From assembly GCA_965112155.1 (NCBI GenBank), contig OZ218099.1: DNA of 64,000 nucleotides, one strand, 5' to 3'. The notes under the pieces were generated by a model. The model saw only the letters and a list, made by a program, of their open reading frames with translations. It was not told the origin of the DNA and did not search any database. Every line of letters starts with the position of its first letter. The stretch's first letter is position 1. This DNA comes from Podarcis liolepis (lineage: Eukaryota). Shown here in pieces: positions 11,044-64,000 of this stretch. A program made the translations under genes and the position numbers.

Positions 11044-11337
<294 letters not shown>

Positions 11338-54825: not shown

Positions 54826-55015
54826 AGGAGGAGAAGAAGAGGAGGAGTTTGGATTTGATATCCCGCTTTATCACTACCCTAAGGAGTCTCAAAGCGGCTA
54901 ACATTCTCCTTTCCCTTCCTCCCCCACCCAGCAGCTGCATGTGGAGAAGCGGAGATGCGAACCCGGTTCACCAGATTACGAGACTACCACTCTTAACCAC
55001 TACACCACACTGGCT
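54826..55015 (-). mobile_element. tRNA-derived SINE (Squam3-like), internally deleted
   Basis: Minus strand: agccagtgtggtgtagtggttaagagtgg (A box), gggttcgcatc (B box), (CTC/CTT)n tail. Confidence 0.75.
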
Positions 55016-55300
55016 GTAGATGGGTGGAGGTGTATTTTATTCATATGCTGAACTGCCCTTTGACCAAATATTGCCAGAAAATAAAACACAACAACAACAA
55101 CAACCCACTATATTTATACATACATACACACAAAGTCCTGAGTATTTTCACGTCTTGGGAAAATCCCCCAAAAAACTTGCTCACACCAGACAGATATTAA
55201 TTTAAAATGGCACCTTTGTTGTGGAAACACTGGCAAATTTGTCATTCTGGCTCCCTATGTGAATGACTAGTAGGTATGTAAATAAGCCACTCAGCTTCCT

Positions 55301-55312
55301 TTTATTTTTATT
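55301..55312 (-). terminator. Candidate poly(A) signals of the clathrin-like gene
   Basis: Two adjacent AATAAA on the minus strand about 520 nt past the stop; another at 55036-55041. Confidence 0.35.
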
Positions 55313-55830
55313 TTTTTTCAAAGCAATGGTAAGTCAGCAGGTCATGACCTAGAAGGTGGGAAAGGCAGAGCTGTGGATAGAAGCTCTTGCCTCCGCTGCA
55401 CCAATGACCCAGTGTTCCTTGGAGACAAGGCACACAGCTGCCACAAGATCAGCACCCCTTTCAAAAGGGAAGCAAGCCAGACAATATAGCAGGCAGAGAC
55501 CACCACCAGACACATATATAGTCAATGCCAATGCCCCCTGCAGCATAAATAACACCCTCTTTGCTCCTCATAAAAAAATCTCCAATATACCCAAAACATC
55601 ACATTCACGTTCATAGTTCTAAGAGTCATCTTTCCCCACAAAAATTATCAATTCTTTCTTCTCTGCTTCCATAGCAGCTCAGCAGGCATCCACATTACTG
55701 CTATGGACATCACCCTGTTCCTATGCTTTCAATTTGCCTTTCCCAAAGCCCCCATAAGATCCACCTAGGAATGAAAACAGTTTTGAGGCACTTGCAAGCG
55801 TTCCATCTCAGTATTTTGGGTGAGGAGAAG

Positions 55831-55968
55831 TCACTCCACAGAAATGGCTTTCCGTGGAGCAGGAATCTGGCCCACCAGTTGTAGCACCCGCTGGGAAAGG
55901 CAGAGGCTGGTAGGATGGTGGGAGATATATTGACACAGAGCATATGGACAGATAGAGATAGACAGCAC
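55831..55968 (-). CDS. Clathrin terminal-domain-like gene, coding exon 8 with stop codon
   Basis: tttgctgctcccccag| VLSISICPYALCQYISHHPTSLCLSQRVLQLVGQIPAPRKAISVE then TGA. Compare CLTC [29 protein letters not shown]. Confidence 0.82.
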   Translation of the reverse strand: MLSISICPYALCQYISHHPTSLCLSQRVLQLVGQIPAPRKAISVE

Positions 55969-56091
55969 CTGGGGGAGCAGCAAAGACAAAGGGGAGTTTA
56001 GGTAACCCGAAGTCAATGGCTCCCAGACCTCACCCCCCCCTTCACTTCATTTCCACCCCAACACTTAAGTCCCTCCATTCCTCTAACTCAC

Positions 56092-56268
56092 CTTGCCACT
56101 ACGGCAAACTCCCAGCAGGCTGTGGGGCTTCTCATCATCAAGTACAGTAGCGAAAAGGATATCTAAGACCAGGTGGATGCGATGGATGGTTTGTGCCGTC
56201 TCCACGTCAGCAAGGAAGAGAAAAGCATGCTTGGTAAGAATGACCACCACACCCAAGTGGGGCAGGAA
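56092..56268 (-). CDS. Clathrin terminal-domain-like gene, coding exon 7 (177 nt)
   Basis: ttctatccttttag| FLPHLGVVVILTKHAFLFLADVETAQTIHRIHLVLDILFATVLDDEKPHSLLGVCRSGK |gtgagt. Compare CLTC [41 protein letters not shown]...GIIGVNRKGQ. Confidence 0.92.
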
Positions 56269-57072
56269 CTAAAAGGATAGAAAAGCAGTTGCTTGAGAAG
56301 TCTGAATCAGTCCCCTTCCCACATCACATCAATACTATTTAACCATACTCTGACTGGGATTACCAGCATGGCTCTTGAGTGCATAATGGCACTCTCAGAT
56401 CACCCATCCAGGGGGCCCTGACCTCCCTTAATAAAAAAATATTTTGTTTGTTAGTTTAGGGCATCCCTGTCTGCTTCTTTTGTCTATTTTGTTTCTGCTC
56501 TTGGTGTCTGTCTGTGGGGGGGACGGACAACCCATGTTTTGCCTGTTTTTTCAGGCAGTGAGGGAGTTCTAAGCACAGGCAGTTTTCCTTGTGTGAAATT
56601 GATATCTTGTGATGGCCACAGAAGTTTTAGATTTAGAAACGAGTCCCCAGGCCCGAAGAGGTTAGGCACCCTTTGCCAAAAACAGGCATGCGGAACCTTT
56701 GGCCCTCTAGCTGTTGATGAACTACAACTCCCATGGCTATGTTTTCTGGGGCTGATGGGAGCTGTAGTTCAGCAACATCTGGAGTTCCAGAGGTTCCCCA
56801 ACAATGCCCTAAAAGCTTCTTCCCCTTGTCCCAACTACTCCCGGGCACTTGGAAAACATGACCGCCAACTCTGGATCAAATAGCCAGACATCCACTGAGT
56901 TAGATGGGGAAGGCACAAAAAAACCCCACCACCAACTACATCAGCCCAACTGACACCTTCCAGATGTTTTGGATTACAATTCCCATCAGACCCAGTCAGC
57001 ATGGGGATGAGAGAAGTTGTTGTCCAAGGTTCAGCAGGTCCATAAGCCAACTGTCTCCAAGGCAAAACTCAC

Positions 57073-57186
57073 CTGTACTGCACTGGGGAAGTCCCCTAAC
57101 TGAGTCCCCTTGAAAGGCAAGGTGTCGCGGGCACTAAGCAAGGCGGCGTTCCCTGGCTGATGTGGGCCTAGCTCTACCACATGAAA
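57073..57186 (-). CDS. Clathrin terminal-domain-like gene, coding exon 6 (114 nt)
   Basis: tttgtgtctgcag| FHVVELGPHQPGNAALLSARDTLPFKGTQLGDFPSAVQ |gtgagt. Same 38-codon length as CLTC [38 protein letters not shown]. Confidence 0.92.
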
Positions 57187-57298
57187 CTGCAGACACAAAC
57201 AAGAAGCAAGTGCAGAGTTAGAGACTTTACTGGCTCCCTACCCAGTAGACCTTGGCTCCCAACTTCTTCTTTGCCCATCCTTACTAAGCCCCAGTCAC

Positions 57299-57463
57299 CT
57301 GTCCAGCCTGTTCCTTGCCTCTCCGCACAGCAGCTAAGAGGGATGTTGAAGGTTTTGGATTCCTGGAAAATCTGTGCTGAGGCAAGGCTACTGCTTGGGC
57401 TTCTATGACCTGAGACAGTGGGCCCCCTCGCCAATACAGCTGGGTCAGGCCCACAACTTGGCT
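57299..57463 (-). CDS. Clathrin terminal-domain-like gene, coding exon 5 (165 nt)
   Basis: tttccttctcacag| SQVVGLTQLYWRGGPLSQVIEAQAVALPQHRFSRNPKPSTSLLAAVRRGKEQAGQ |gtgact. Compare CLTC [54 protein letters not shown]. Confidence 0.9.
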
Positions 57464-57648
57464 CTGTGAGAAGGAAACGAAGAGAGAGAGATTCAGAGCA
57501 GGGGTAGCCAATGGCGCTTAGACTACAACTCGCACCATCCCTGACTATTGGGCCATGCCAGTTAGGGCTGGTGAGAACTGGAGTCCAACGATATCTGAGG
57601 CACAATGTTGGCTATATCTGGGTTAGAACAGAGCCACCAAGCCGTGTA

Positions 57649-58097
57649 GACTGGTACCCTCAGGTTACAGACGCTTCAGGTTGCATACGCTTCAGGTTAC
57701 AGACTCCGCTAACCCAGAAATAGTGTCAGTTACAGATAGGTAGCCGTGTTGGTCTGCCATAGTCAAAATAAAAAAATTCCTTCCAGTAGCACCTTAAAGA
57801 CCAACTAAGTTAGTTCTTGGTATGAGCTTTCGTGTGAAGAAGTGTGCATGCACACGAAAGCTCATACCAAGAACTAACTTAGTTGGTCTTTAAGGTGCTA
57901 CTGGAAGGAATTTTTTTATCCAGAAATAGTGCTTCAGGTTAAGAACTTTGCTTCAGGATGAGAACAGAAATCGTGCTCCGGCGGCGCGGCAGCAGCAGGA
58001 GGCCCCATTAGTGAAAGTGGTGCTTCAGGTTAAGAACAGTTTCAGGTTAAGTACGGACCTCCGGAACGAATTAAGTACTTAACCTGAAGTACCACTG
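57649..58097. mobile_element. Tc1/mariner MITE family B split by a Penelope insertion
   Basis: Colinear with 26294-26535 once 57726-57919 and one TSD copy are removed; TA flanks. Confidence 0.88.
57726..57919. mobile_element. Penelope pLTR inverted-duplication insertion
   Basis: 12-bp TSD ccagaaatagtg (57714-57725, 57920-57931); perfect 69-bp inverted arms 57768-57836 and 57851-57919. Confidence 0.9.
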
Positions 58098-58349
58098 TAA
58101 TGAGTTTAGAAACAAGAGACTTAACTTTTAACATTTTTTTTTTTAATGGATAAGCTGAAAGAAAAAGGGATTGACAATGAAAACCAGAGAAGGGTGGTGG
58201 GAAGTCAGGGGATTCTGAGAATCCTAAATGTGAAGGTGAATGATATGTTTAAATTGAAATGTGTTATGTAAAACTTAATTAAAATATTTTAAAAATATAA
58301 AATAGAAACAGAAGACATATCACAGCCATGGGGTCAGAGAATTATGTAC

Positions 58350-58468
58350 CTGCTCAAGTCCTAGAGCAGAGAGAGCCATCCACATATGACTGGCATCCCG
58401 TTGATATCCTACCACCTCCATGCCACAGAGACGTTCATGTCGGCTAAACTGCCAACTTGGTCCGGAAC
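58350..58468 (-). CDS. Clathrin terminal-domain-like gene, coding exon 4 (119 nt)
   Basis: tctcccttcaag| (R)SGPSWQFSRHERLCGMEVVGYQRDASHMWMALSALGLEQ |gtacat. Compare CLTC [38 protein letters not shown]. Confidence 0.9.
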
Positions 58469-58598
58469 CTTGAAGGGAGATTACAGACAAGGAATGGAGT
58501 CAAGGTCTTCTGCTCAATTCATATGGCTTACTAGATAGATTAAGTAGGGAACTTCTGGCCAAGGGGTTCAATTGGACATGCCAGGCCCGTTCCGTAAC

Positions 58599-58734
58599 CA
58601 GTGGTGGCCAAACTTGGCCCTCCAGCTGTTTTGGGACTATAATTCCCTTCATCACTGACCGTTGGTCCTGTTAGCTAGGAAAGATGGGAGTTGTAGTCCA
58701 AAAACAGCTGGAGGGCCAAGTTTGGCCACCACTG
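58599..58734. mobile_element. Fold-back MITE (hAT-like)
   Basis: 34-bp perfect TIR cagtggtggccaaacttggccctccagctgtttt. No clean TSD. Degenerate relatives at about 23120, 46740, 56683, 56900 and 57490. Confidence 0.8.
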
Positions 58735-59364
58735 CACCTAAACCACACTCACCCACCCATCAGTGATTATGTCAGCTGATGGGCGGGAGGACAGGGTTTA
58801 ATCCTGCACTGGCTATGCCGTCCTGTTCCTAGGTGGCAACAGGATCACACAGCTGAGGAAGCAGGATTTAATCTAATGAGCTAATGTGCCAAGATTAAAG
58901 TGCTCTGTCTTCTCCTTTAAGGGGGCTGGGCTGCATATGGCGCCACTGCTGCCCCCGCCCACTTAAAGGAGAAGCTGAGCAAAGTGTCAATTGAAACAGC
59001 TTCCCCGGGGGAGAGAGTCTGCTTCAAAGGGCACTTTGCTGCTTTAGGACAATCCTCCATGGATAGATCCTCAAACTACCCCTCTGCTTTTAATTTTCAT
59101 CACAGTAGACTGTTGAGGCAACGCCAGCATACTGCTTCCGCAATAATTCCCTTCAATAATCACTAACTTATCCCATAAACTAGACAGCCTGCCTCTCCTA
59201 CAATGCATGTGTCCTTTGTCCTTTACTCCCAACTCCATCCACCAAGCACCCTTGGTTTCACCACTTAACTCCATTCATCATTCTGCCTACAACCTGCCCC
59301 TGCCCAGGATTCTTTCATTATAGCCACCCTAACAACATCTTCCCCAAGTCCCTTGAACACTCAC

Positions 59365-59514
59365 GTTTTACGGTCCAGTGGAAGACATCCTCCTCTGTCA
59401 CCACAGCCAGAATGTCAGCGTTCAACCACACCCAGTACTCAATAGGATGAGCAAATTCCCACTGGTATCTTAAGGAACGCTGGTCCACGTCGTAGACCTG
59501 GGCCAGCTGCCCCG
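59365..59514 (-). CDS. Clathrin terminal-domain-like gene, coding exon 3 (150 nt)
   Basis: cctcttccttctag| (A)GQLAQVYDVDQRSLRYQWEFAHPIEYWVWLNADILAVVTEEDVFHWTVK |gtgagt. Ungapped match to CLTC [50 protein letters not shown]. Confidence 0.92.
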
Positions 59515-60278
59515 CTAGAAGGAAGAGGAGGGAAGGTTAAGACAACTGCTGCGGTTTGAGGGAGTGGAGCCGCTTGACAGTGAAGGCCCCTCAATTTATA
59601 AAACAGACAATTCACTGTATTTTAGGTGCACCTGTGTCTCTTCTGCAAAACTGAATGAGAAGCCCCCACAACCAAATAGAAAGCAGGTAAATAATACGGA
59701 AAGCTACAAATGAGAACTTTGGGACATGGCAGCTCATTCACCAGAAATGACTTGATGTTTCCAAAGGCTGCAGAGAGAGCGCTTGGCATTACCAGAACAT
59801 TAAATGGGTCAGAGACAAAGAATTCCTTTGGAAATGTTGCTGTCTCAAGGGAAAACAAATACTCCAACCTCTCCCAGTTTTAGAACCACTGCCCAAAATA
59901 AAATGGCAGCCAGACGGTGTTACCACCTTCCTTCTTCTAAGCCCATCTCCCACTCAAAGACACCTCAGTTCAATTCAAGCCCTTTACTTCTCTGCAATAA
60001 CACAAGTCCTCCCCCTTAAGTACCAAAATGACCCTCTAGCATTCGCTTTCCATCACTCCCATTTTTTCCCCCTTCACCCCAATCCACACTGGATTGCTTC
60101 CAACGCAAGTCCTACTCTAGAGCAGACCCACTGAAATTTAAGGACATTTGTAACTTAGGCCCACTCATTTCAGTGGGTCTAGTCTGTGGCGAATTTAGTA
60201 ACACACAACACCCCGACTTCCTCTCCTTTGCTCAACTCTACTTTCCAATAACCAGATAGCGTTCCTATTAATGAAATA

Positions 60279-60469
60279 CCATGGACGCTCGAGTTGCAAA
60301 CCCGCAGTGTTCACAATCCACGTCTGCGCATACGCGGGTTGTGATTCGGCGCTTCTGTGCATGCACGACCACCAAAACCCGAAGTAACCCGTTCCGGTAC
60401 TTCTGGGTTTCGGCGATCCGCAACCCGAAAAAAAGGAACCTGAAGTGGCTGTAATCCGAGGTATGACTG
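60279..60469. mobile_element. Tc1/mariner (Tigger-like) MITE at the exon 2 donor of the clathrin-like gene
   Basis: TA flanks (60277-60278, 60470-60471); imperfect TIR ccatggacgctcgagttgc / gtaatccgaggtatgactg; CpG-rich interior. Confidence 0.7.
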
Positions 60470-60472
60470 TAC

Positions 60473-60704
60473 CTCTGACAGCAAGCAGTGGACGGCTAGG
60501 ATTAGCCAGAGCCCCTTGCACATGATGCAAAGTCCAGTTTGGCGGAGCCTGATCCTCATTGGGAGATGCACGGGGATCCAAGAGCGTCAGCGATTGCCGG
60601 GAGGAGTCCCCAGGAGGGCTGTGCCGGACACAGAGGCGAGAGGCAGACGAGAAGGTTACACGAGGGTAGGTGATGTATTCCGATACAATGCCATGGGCTT
60701 GGAG
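60473..60704 (-). CDS. Clathrin terminal-domain-like gene, coding exon 2 (232 nt)
   Basis: cccattctctgcag| LQAHGIVSEYITYPRVTFSSASRLCVRH...VQGALANPSRPLLAVR +1 nt |gtacag. Compare CLTC [28 protein letters not shown]...ADSAIMNPASKVIALK (also phase 1). Confidence 0.88.
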
Positions 60705-62549
60705 CTGCAGAGAATGGGAGCGTGAGTGGAGCTTTCCTCCAGAAAAGTGTTTCAAAGCCCACAAAACTGTTTGGAGCCAAACCAAGGCTAAGGGAACAGT
60801 GTCTTTGTAGGGGTATGTGTACGATCTGGTGTGACCCAAGGTTGGGGTGAGGGAGAAACCCAAGTATGTCAATTTCTGCTCCTTATTTAAGCTGCTCATG
60901 TACTTTTTTTGTTGAACAAGGAACTGCAAACCAGGAAGCACCATGAGCATCATTAGGAAACCCTCCCCCCTCAGAAGTCAACAAAAAGTATAGGACTGAA
61001 CTGCAGCTGGACTCCATGGCTGAGCAGCGATTTGAACCCAGGTTCCCCACCCTCCAACTCTGCCGCTATTCATTCTTTCCACCTGCTACCTCCTTGTAAT
61101 ATCCATCATACACTTTCAGGCCATTTGCTTGATTAGGTCTGACCTGCTCATTAGGAAATTAACTGCAGCAAAATAAGTGTAGAAGAGTGGAAAGATTAGC
61201 AAGTACTTTGTACTGCTGACTAGTTAAAAACAACTTAATACGAAAATTAGAAAATCAACACGATAAAAATGGTTTCATGAAGATCTAATCTCGAGATTAT
61301 TTCTGCCAAATGTGACACTTTTATATTTCCCTTGTTGGAATAGAAAAAATATGGACAGCACTGAGAAATCATGTTCCAAACTGAAGTCCAAAATGCATTT
61401 AAAGTGTTGATTTTTGCTATAAATTAAAGATAGAGGTACTAAGTAATAAAAATTTACATGAAAGAGTGATCCCTACAGAGTAAGATCAGAAATAAATAAA
61501 TAAATAAATAAATTGCAGGTAGCCATTTTGACAGGAACAACGTTAGGAAAAAAGTCAATCCAAGTCAGGCATTAGCATTCCCATGTTACTCAACATGGAA
61601 GTGGGGATGCAACAAATAACTCCACCTTTGCATGAAGAATGCAACTGACTGTACTAACAGAGCCGCTTCCTTTATAGGCACAGAAAATGTAACCTTATAT
61701 AAGTATATTAGGAAGGAAGCCTAGTCAGTTTCAATGGTGCTTACTCCCAGGCAAGGATGTGGAGGATTACAGCCTTAACGACTGCACTCAAGACTGGTTT
61801 TCCCTTTTCTTTTCTACACCCAGAAAGGAGAAGCTCAAAAAAGTCACTGGAGAAATCCAAGGTTCTAAGGCAGCTGTGATCTGGCATCATGGGCAGAAGT
61901 CACACACCCATGCCCCCAAATATGTTCACAGCCCAATTCTCTTCAGATATATCCAACGATGCTTTTAAAGTGAAACATGCCTGCATGCAAGTTAATAGAG
62001 GACAAGGCTTTTGCACATAGCCAAGTATTGGATTTGGGCTAGCAGGTGGCAGTGTGACTAGACTGACCTTGGCTACAACCTAAGTGGTCTTTTAATGCAG
62101 GGGATTTTAGGCTAGAAATCACCTGAACCCACAACCTGTCATATTACTAGCAGACTGAAGGGCTGGCATAAGCAGTATCTCCCAGCAGCCGTCCCCAACC
62201 TGCAATATGGACATAATGGGCTGTATTTGTGATGGCAGGCATGGACACTGCCAGATTTTTTTTTGGGTGGGGCAGGCCTTTTGTTGGGGGGGTGGGCAAA
62301 ACCTCAGTTAGCTATGTATTTTTATCGATTTTTATTGACTGGGGGGGCAGCTGCCCCTCCCTGCCACCAATGTTTCTTGAAACACCTAAAAAATAAAAAA
62401 GGCCCTTCCTCTCTGAGTGAGGACAGTGCAGTAATACTTCTTTTAAGCTTTGCTTGCGGAGGGTGGAGGCATGCCCAGTCAGAACTCCCCTAACCAACCA
62501 CTGATTCCTATAGGAGCAACTCTCATTTATGACCCCAGAGGAGATTTAA

Positions 62550-63520
62550 AATGGCTTCCACCGGAACCCCGCAAATCTTCTATCCACACAACCACCTCGC
62601 CCCTTTCACACTCTCTGGGGCTGCATAGCGCCGCAACCACCCCTGAGCTCGACCCATTCCAAATCGCGCACCCGCCCCGGCCCGTCACCACCTCTCGAGT
62701 AACTATTTTCCCACAGAGGCCTATAGGTTGAGCTACGTGGGTTTTTTTTGGGGGGGGGTGTTTCCTGCTTACCTGAGTCAAAACTTCCACGCGGACTGGA
62801 GACACAGGCTCGCTCATAGCTTGGTATTCCGAATCAACCTGCAGTGCAGAGAAAAATAGGAGCAAATGGTGCGCGGGAGAGAAAAGGGGGACACGTGGGG
62901 AGAGGGGCGGCTTTGGGGAAGGTTTATGGAGTCGGGAGTGACGACCCAGGCTAGCAAGTAAATTATAACAGGAGTTAACAGTAAGAGGCTCACCCCGAGG
63001 AAAAACTGTAACTAAATCCATGAAAACAACTGCACCACATAGTTCAATATTTGAGCTTTTAAAAACTTACAGGGAAGCGCTCCGCGTAGCTGGCAGTCTT
63101 CCCCACCGCGGCTGCCCAAAGTTCCTACTCTTTCCTCCTCCTTTTTCCTCGGATTATAATGGCGTTTCAAGGCCATTCCTGCCCTCTTTCCCAGGTGTAC
63201 ATGATCTTGCTTTCAGACTCGATCCAATTAGCCCTAGCAAAAGGGAGGATCCCTCAGCCACATCTCTCTCTACTACTCCTACCGGTTCGACCAATCCCAG
63301 ACCAAGGGCCCCATGGAGAGCAGCCTGATGCGGACCCAGGAAAAAGGGGGAGGAAAGCAACCAACTCGCCCCACCCGGAGCAAGCGGACAGGAAGCCGTT
63401 GTGTATGAAAACCAACAGCCTAACGATCTGCTACGCGCAGAACACAGACCGTGGAGTTTGCACACCCGCTTTGGTATTTTGCACGAGAAAGCGGCATATA
63501 AATGCTTTTATAAATACAGT
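62550..63520 (-). promoter_or_regulatory. CpG-rich region, likely promoter and 5' end of the clathrin-like gene
   Basis: Visibly higher CpG density than the rest of the window and not an obvious repeat. Contains coding exon 1, an upstream CCT|gtaagt donor (63071/63070) and a minus-strand TATAAAAG at 63505-63512. Confidence 0.5.
62773..62817 (-). CDS. Clathrin heavy chain terminal-domain-like gene, coding exon 1 (whole exon 62773-62838)
   Basis: Acceptor tttttctctgcactgcag| at 62838; ATG at 62817 (G at -3); MSEPVSPVRVEVLTQ then |gtaagc. Compare CLTC MAQILPIRFQEHLQ|. Confidence 0.85.
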
Positions 63521-64000
63521 GCAATATATAACTCTTGGATGTTAAGCTTTAGAGGCATATCAGAAGGAGCTGTGGCTAGCAGAAGATCTGGGTTGCAGAC
63601 CAGAATCGGAATCAGGTTCGTTGCTTGGTTGTCTTCAGCCCAAGCTCCTGATAGTGCAGAGAACTGAAAATCCACACTGGCTCCTCCTAAGTTTATTTCG
63701 AAGCAAGTCCAATTAATTTCAGCGGTGCTCATTTCTCAAGGCCTTGTCCTCAAGAAAAGGTAGTAAATGTGACTCTGGGTGGTGCTGATACAGACGTGGA
63801 ATCACCCTACAAAAATTCTTTTTCCTGCCGAACCAACCCTGCACATCGCGAATGGGATGTCAGAGAGCAAAAACTTCTCGCCTTGGTGCGCCTGTTTTCT
63901 ATGGGGTTTGAGGGGGGAGGCGGGGAAGGGAAAGGACCTTTGCTTATGCTCAGAGTAGCATGCAATCAACGTGAGCCCCCGCTTTCAATTTGAACTCGAG

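Follow-up and report, generated by a model that had tools for sequence, protein, structure and literature searches.

A probable stand-alone clathrin terminal domain encoded beside PLXNA1 in the lizard Podarcis liolepis

The terminal domain (TD) of the clathrin heavy chain (CHC) is a hub which reads the motifs of adaptor proteins, and few eukaryotic domains are more strongly conserved. The TD of CHC22 is close to that of CHC17, and the small protein CLHC1 (clathrin heavy chain linker domain-containing 1) takes its name from the linker of the CHC, not from its propeller. Here we describe a gene on the minus strand of a 64,000-nt stretch of Podarcis liolepis DNA (contig OZ218099.1; the window, to whose positions all coordinates refer). 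It is a functional protein-coding gene, and its 379-aa product is a stand-alone TD, i.e. a seven-bladed beta-propeller with the first two linker helices.

The closest described system is the TD of CLTC (CHC17; residues 1–363; PDB 1bpo, 1c9i, 1utc, 5m5r). The fold and its extent are the same, the sequence match is colinear, and identity extends to W111, W113, W164, L183, Q192, the DFP motif and 32 further residues of the core. Unlike CLTC, the family to which the new gene belongs is without leg, light-chain and trimerisation regions, and it occupies a separate locus beside PLXNA1. CLTCL1 (CHC22) resembles it in being a vertebrate paralogue of CLTC that has been lost in a patchy manner (PMC6548504), but CHC22 is a full-length, triskelion-forming chain. 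In the same work, the main survey of CHC genes, lamprey has a single CHC gene, CLTCL1 was detected in jawed vertebrates only, and a TD-only family is not mentioned. The present family has lamprey members (375–376 aa), unlike CHC22 as detected in that survey. In the literature on third or TD-only clathrin genes no study of a TD-only family was found, and this clathrin-derived family is known so far from automatic models only. WD40 propellers (Cdc20, WDR61) have the general propeller architecture in common with it, but in the fold search given below they scored much worse than the clathrin TDs.

Gene structure, transcript and fold

The window DNA was analysed exon by exon, while whole-protein work was done with the database orthologues P0154 (Podarcis muralis) and P0022. 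A first-pass annotation, made from the sequence alone, had proposed an intact eight-exon open reading frame with GT-AG introns and matching phases, and this was borne out by the exon translations, by colinear CHC matches, by joints in transcript contigs and by the gene models of other lacertids; the last three lines of evidence rule out a chance arrangement. Each of the eight minus-strand exons (62817–55831) translated in the proposed frame to the proposed peptide, and the sole stop in the reading frame was the terminal TGA at 55833–55831. All seven introns had GT at the 5' end and AG behind a pyrimidine tract at the 3' end. The coding exon lengths of 45, 232, 150, 119, 165, 114, 177 and 138 nt sum to 1140 nt, with compatible phases and split codons. 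The gene is composed of the following features:

63601..63732, minus strand: optional upstream coding exon; ATG at 63732, 44 open codons, GT donor at 63600–63599
62773..62838, minus strand: exon 1; acceptor AG just upstream of 62838, 21-nt leader, ATG at 62817–62815, 15 codons
60473..60704, minus strand: exon 2; 232 nt, CHC residues ~15–84 (blade 1, 1–2 groove), bears the family-invariant W at CHC 64
59365..59514, minus strand: exon 3; 150 nt, CHC residues 85–132, CHC match in PDB with E 7e-4, junctions in contigs
58350..58468, minus strand: exon 4; 119 nt, CHC ~135–173, with E152, V154, G155 and the retained W164, PDB match with E 2e-3, junctions in contigs
57299..57463, minus strand: exon 5; 165 nt, CHC ~175–227, with Q192, I194 and the QVIEAQAVAL segment, the most conserved block of the family
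57073..57186, minus strand: exon 6; 114 nt, CHC ~228–266, with VVELGPH..GN and DFP
56092..56268, minus strand: exon 7; 177 nt, CHC ~267–324, the query that retrieved the orthologues
55020..55968, minus strand: terminal exon 8; 45 codons and TGA (55968–55831), then a 3' untranslated region (3'UTR) of ~810 nt, low end approximate

The coding limits of the first-pass exons stood, and the corrections concern the start of exon 1 (acceptor at 62838), the optional upstream exon and the 3'UTR of exon 8 down to ~55020. The optional upstream exon supplies the 51-residue N-terminal extension of the 430-aa RefSeq isoforms, and in this long isoform the 21-nt leader of exon 1 is coding. In tblastn the optional exon was 82–87 % identical to the N-termini of P0022, P0161 and P0151; its conservation is below that of the core, and outside lineages are without this exon. 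The Met of exon 1 was aligned with Met1 of CHC and with Met1 of every orthologue.

Transcript contigs were available from three runs (X1–X3), presumed to be RNA, of a related lizard (organism A) that differs from the window by ~1 % in exons and 3–4 % in introns. Junction reads across the seven introns had been suggested as a check in the first-pass annotation, and exact joints were seen for introns 7 to 2, at 55968/56092, 56268/57073, 57186/57299, 57463/58350, 58468/59365 and 59514/60473, each of them flanked by CT..AC on the plus strand. Intron 1 is supported only indirectly: one contig has 63 extra letters 5' of exon 2, consistent with exon 1, and the exon 1 peptide is present in the RefSeq models of relatives. 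The depth of the spliced contigs was 141–289, compared to 4–8 for intron contigs, a ratio more in keeping with cDNA than with a retrocopy.

The contigs ran unbroken from 55965 to 55250 across the stop and then for a further 226–229 nt. A poly(A) signal, AATAAA, is located at 55036–55041 on the minus strand. Since the contigs run unspliced past the stop toward this signal, exon 8 is terminal and the stop is not premature. The CHCR leg repeats (Pfam Clathrin, PF00637) have no place in the product, the stop lying in exon 8 and the transcript continuing as 3'UTR, and the C-terminal trimerisation and light-chain-binding region is likewise outside the product, which according to the transcript evidence ends at ~CHC 365. 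When canonical CHC fragments up to residue 743 were used as tblastn queries against the whole window, the TD exons only (residues 13–324) were found, and in the 55 kb downstream of the gene there was no credible match beyond residue 324. The first-pass view of a TD-only clathrin homologue was thereby upheld. That the locus is instead the 5' part of a full-length CHC gene, e.g. a lizard CLTCL1 of which later exons were missed, would accord with the name 'clathrin heavy chain 2' given to some RefSeq models. This explanation is the most improbable of those considered, as the contigs continue without a joint from exon 8 through the stop and ~800 nt to the poly(A) signal, the downstream search with CHC fragments up to residue 743 was empty, and the models of over 20 species are 369–393 aa long.

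When the separate exons were compared with PDB sequences, colinear CHC matches were obtained for exon 3 (CHC 85–132) and exon 4 (CHC 138–173), with the E-values listed above, and weaker ones for exon 5 (CHC 176–221, E 0.5) and exon 7 (CHC 272–322, E 0.8). Exon 2 alone gave no match in PDB. Pfam, searched exon by exon, gave nothing relevant, and the profile Clathrin_propel (PF01394) matched neither the window exons nor the squamate or turtle proteins. One caecilian isoform scored exactly the gathering score of 21.3 bits, and a precomputed Clathrin_propel match exists for the lungfish protein P0011 and for Rhinatrema. Of the profile check proposed beforehand, the colinear matches in PDB were thus obtained and the exon-by-exon Pfam match was not. 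The caecilian orthologue P0005 matched CHC TD residues 12–338 with E 3e-56.

A structure superposition had also been proposed, and it was performed with the Podarcis muralis orthologue P0154. Its AlphaFold model had a pLDDT of 90.6 and a pTM of 0.90, and in Foldseek the listed ranks 1–37 were all clathrin TDs, with TM 0.84–0.94 and an rmsd of ~1.8–2.7 Å, except for one yeast chain with an rmsd of 4.9 Å. On solved clathrin TDs the model superposed with TM 0.88–0.94 and an rmsd of ~2 Å. Other propellers reached E 1e-9 and TM ~0.5, against E 1e-31 and TM 0.9 for the clathrin TDs. For the lungfish protein, the ESM Atlas model gave a concordant result (TM 0.93). The protein ends after two helices, which are the first linker helices, at ~CHC residue 365.

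Orthologues, descent and selection

With exon 7 as query, seven relatives were retrieved from 1.8 billion representative proteins, and a follow-up with a caecilian protein gave 24. The relatives are 369–393 aa long, come from more than 20 species and bear the automatic names 'clathrin heavy chain 1-like' or '2-like', in some cases 'clathrin heavy chain 2'. They are distributed as follows:

Lampreys: three species, 375–376 aa
Lungfish (Protopterus): 371 aa
Caecilians: three species, 369 aa
Turtles: eleven species
Squamates: eleven lizard species and one amphisbaenian

The 379-aa RefSeq models of Podarcis, Lacerta and Zootoca are 97–100 % identical to the window per exon, and that of Podarcis muralis matches exactly at six of the eight exons. 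The gene is thus already modelled automatically in relatives. The first-pass annotation had guessed that 'clathrin heavy chain-like' models of this kind might exist, and its description of the gene as hidden does not hold. In word-limited searches no member turned up in mammals, birds, crocodilians, snakes, frogs, salamanders, sharks or ray-finned fishes.

In a maximum-likelihood tree the family formed one clade with support 100/100. Within it the order is largely that of the species, i.e. lampreys, then lungfish and caecilians, then turtles and squamates, with a support of 82/82 only for the grouping of lungfish with caecilians. This order suggests that the gene has descended vertically since before the lamprey-gnathostome split. 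The family stem is long (1.5 changes per column) and attaches outside the opisthokont CHCs, a position which is probably due to long-branch attraction. In AU tests a placement inside the animal CHCs was not rejected (p 0.10–0.11), whereas a placement as sister to the eel CHC alone was rejected (p 0.02). A profile search with the family alignment, in which 8000 candidates were scored, gave seven matches and added one plant-like CHC fragment. With this fragment as query, mostly plant CHCs were retrieved, and the eel fragment P0111 was the sole vertebrate CHC listed, so that CLTC and CLTCL1 are not distinguishable in a tree.

The gene had been thought to be neither CLTC nor CLTCL1, and the separate clade agrees with this, as do the identity of 26–32 % between the family and canonical TDs and the location ~44 kb beyond the PLXNA1 stop. 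A CLTCL1 orthologue is ruled out by the truncated product, by this identity and by the locus. Canonical TDs are 69 % identical between eel and fungus and 53 % between eel and plant. It seems probable that the family split from CHC, lost all that follows ~residue 365 and diverged strongly, and that its sequence and length have been conserved since.

Twelve aligned orthologues, from lamprey to lizard, share 80 invariant columns. Conservation is low in the tail and in the 41–60 loop and peaks at CHC 181–240. Ten coding differences between the window and organism A were listed, of which seven were synonymous and three non-synonymous (P = 0.003 against the neutral expectation). Relative to organism A, the coding sequence had diverged by 1.06 %, the 3'UTR by 2.9 % and the introns by 3.66 %. 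Selection, as assumed in the first-pass annotation, is thus supported both by the conservation from lamprey to squamates and by the differences between close relatives. A transcribed relic, i.e. a truncated clathrin duplicate drifting without function, would agree with the strong divergence from CHC, with the failure to find the gene in many vertebrate groups and with the weakly conserved tail and 41–60 loop. A relic is, however, very improbable: the open reading frame is intact and, in lamprey and lungfish as in caecilians and squamates, it stops at nearly the same point and is nearly equally long, the 80 columns are invariant, synonymous changes are in excess, coding divergence is one third of intron divergence, and the spliced transcript is abundant.

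Several points weigh against the reading of a conserved and transcribed TD-only gene. The absence from mammals, birds, frogs and teleosts follows from word-limited searches, and is a lead rather than proof of loss. Clathrin_propel stays below its cut-off on the squamate proteins. The alignment behind the P0154 model took in canonical CHCs, so that the model leans to the CHC fold, and the model made from a family-only alignment had a low pLDDT of 63, with the same fold ranking. The dN/dS of ~0.14 (0.23 if two unlisted differences in exon 4 are both non-synonymous) was calculated from the ten listed differences, four of which are polymorphic among runs. That the runs with spliced contigs are RNA is a guess. 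In the raw RNA-seq run X23, from another species, the intronic repeats were covered and the exons were not, which we list here although it gives no support either way.

The C-termini of the lamprey, lungfish and caecilian proteins (P0027, P0011, P0005, P0010) read K-[IV]-T-[AS]-V, resembling a class I PDZ ligand. In squamates the C-termini are [IV]-[SP]-V-[ED], in the window ISVE (55834–55850), and turtles have yet other tails. Amniotes may thus have lost a docking motif that formed the ancestral tail. Podarcis muralis has two 379-aa proteins, P0154 and P0163, which are one residue apart (R86H); the pair may reflect a second scaffold or haplotype, or a recent gene duplication. The window species has N, T and K at 60558, 60586 and 56129, where the transcripts of organism A have K, M and R. 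Podarcis lilfordi likewise has K at 60558 and R at 56129, and the N, T and K states may be derived changes or alleles.

Binding grooves and possible role

The definitions of the four peptide-binding sites of the TD were taken from PMC5182127 (Table 2), and site residues were numbered by CHC with the eel CHC as ruler. No family member departs from W164, L183 and Q192 in the arrestin box, and the region around it, CHC 181–240, is the best conserved of the family and at least as conserved as in CHCs. The clathrin box has retained its hydrophobic floor and, except for an E in caecilians, Q89, and position 91 is occupied by F or Y; all members have W instead of R64, nearly all have L instead of K98, and T87 has given way to a hydrophobic residue. 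The W box has E in place of Q152 throughout the family, and V in place of I154 in almost every member. In the Royle box, F9 is replaced by V, I or L and E11 by V or Q.

Altogether, 21 family-invariant positions bear a residue which is seen in no CHC, and ten of these are at sites where CHCs do not vary from plants to animals. Unlike the TD of CLTC, the family has R64W, Q152E, N155G, H197Q, A199V, F201L and others fixed at CHC-invariant sites. The window translations of exons 2, 4 and 5 carry the family invariants W64, E152, G155, Q197, V199 and L201. Because family-invariant residues replace CHC-invariant ones, the binding surface appears, judged from the sequence, to be retuned and not decaying.

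Based on established clathrin anatomy, a protein without the CHCR legs, the light-chain site and the trimerisation domain forms no triskelia or lattices, and the product should be a soluble monomer, unable to build coats. It would read short linear motifs in a peptide-in-groove manner, and the blade 4–5 (arrestin-box) groove is the best conserved part of the family. As the arrestin box is kept, the basic residues R64 and K98 of the clathrin box are lost and the W-box Q is replaced by E, the set of ligands is expected to overlap that of clathrin only partly. The protein would then modulate or divert motif-bearing, adaptor-like proteins without coat building.

The main rival is that the product acts as an endogenous decoy. 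A free TD would bind clathrin's own motifs (clathrin box, W box) and compete with triskelia for adaptors, damping clathrin-mediated traffic where it is expressed. The architecture is that of the TD 1–363 constructs of the solved peptide complexes, and the residues retained in the clathrin box (the hydrophobic floor, Q89 or its E in caecilians, F/Y91), together with the entire arrestin-box triad, would suit such a role. A pure competitor should, however, retain clathrin's sites, yet the identity to canonical TDs is 26–32 %, compared to 69 % for the TD between fungi and vertebrates. In addition, the family-invariant changes R64W, Q152E, N155G, H197Q and A199V fall on positions that are fixed among CHCs of plants through animals, K98 has become L in almost every member, and the Royle-box residues F9 and E11 are altered. 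We consider the decoy unlikely, although it is clearly less improbable than a relic or a missed full-length gene. The better explanation, which we hold to be likely, is an ancient, selected and soluble motif-binding TD propeller, incapable of forming coats.

A wider proposal is put forward tentatively, at somewhat less than even probability: the gene may be a third CHC-derived gene of vertebrates, duplicated before the lamprey-gnathostome split, reduced to a free TD with retuned grooves that serves as a coat-independent motif reader or regulator, and then lost repeatedly. Its origin may have been in a whole-genome duplication, as human gene positions would suggest. A leg-less copy of the TD that has lasted for about half a billion years, and in which two of the four sites have other, fixed residues, would be a natural experiment on TD specificity, and it points to a role related to clathrin but independent of a coat. 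It would also revise the gene history of the family, in which the survey has a single CHC gene for lamprey and a pair for jawed vertebrates (PMC6548504); if true, a third CHC-derived gene older than the lamprey split contradicts this picture. The usual model systems would have missed the gene, since it was not found here in mammals or birds. Both Anolis and lamprey are experimentally tractable.

Surroundings of the gene

The last coding exon of PLXNA1 is located at 11242–11334 on the plus strand and ends with ...DTMALSS, with the stop to 11337. It matched the C-terminus of Plexin-A1 (3ryt residues 596–626) with E 4e-11. The clathrin-like gene and PLXNA1 are thus tail to tail, ~44 kb apart when measured from the PLXNA1 stop codon. 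An Rfam scan of the window gave no match.

Directly past the poly(A) signal, at ~54900–55015 on the minus strand, there is a tRNA-like SINE head (GGTGTAGTGGTTAAGAG...). Intron 4 contains a highly repeated element at 57638–58234, whose depth reaches tens of thousands in the contig runs, and ~500–1000 in raw RNA reads of another species. Many reads jump 206–214 nt within it (e.g. 57713 to 57920), suggesting an internal duplication or length variants of an interspersed repeat. Interspersed repeats are also present at 58633–58831 (intron 3) and 56643–57040 (intron 6), both covered by reads of several species, and loose ends at 58683 and 58716 run into many differing flanks.

On the other side, the window stops 1.2 kb upstream of exon 1. 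In two turtle models, P0016 and P0006, the TD-only protein is preceded by a fused N-terminus of the EF-hand (calmodulin-like) kind, which suggests that an EF-hand gene lies just upstream in turtles.

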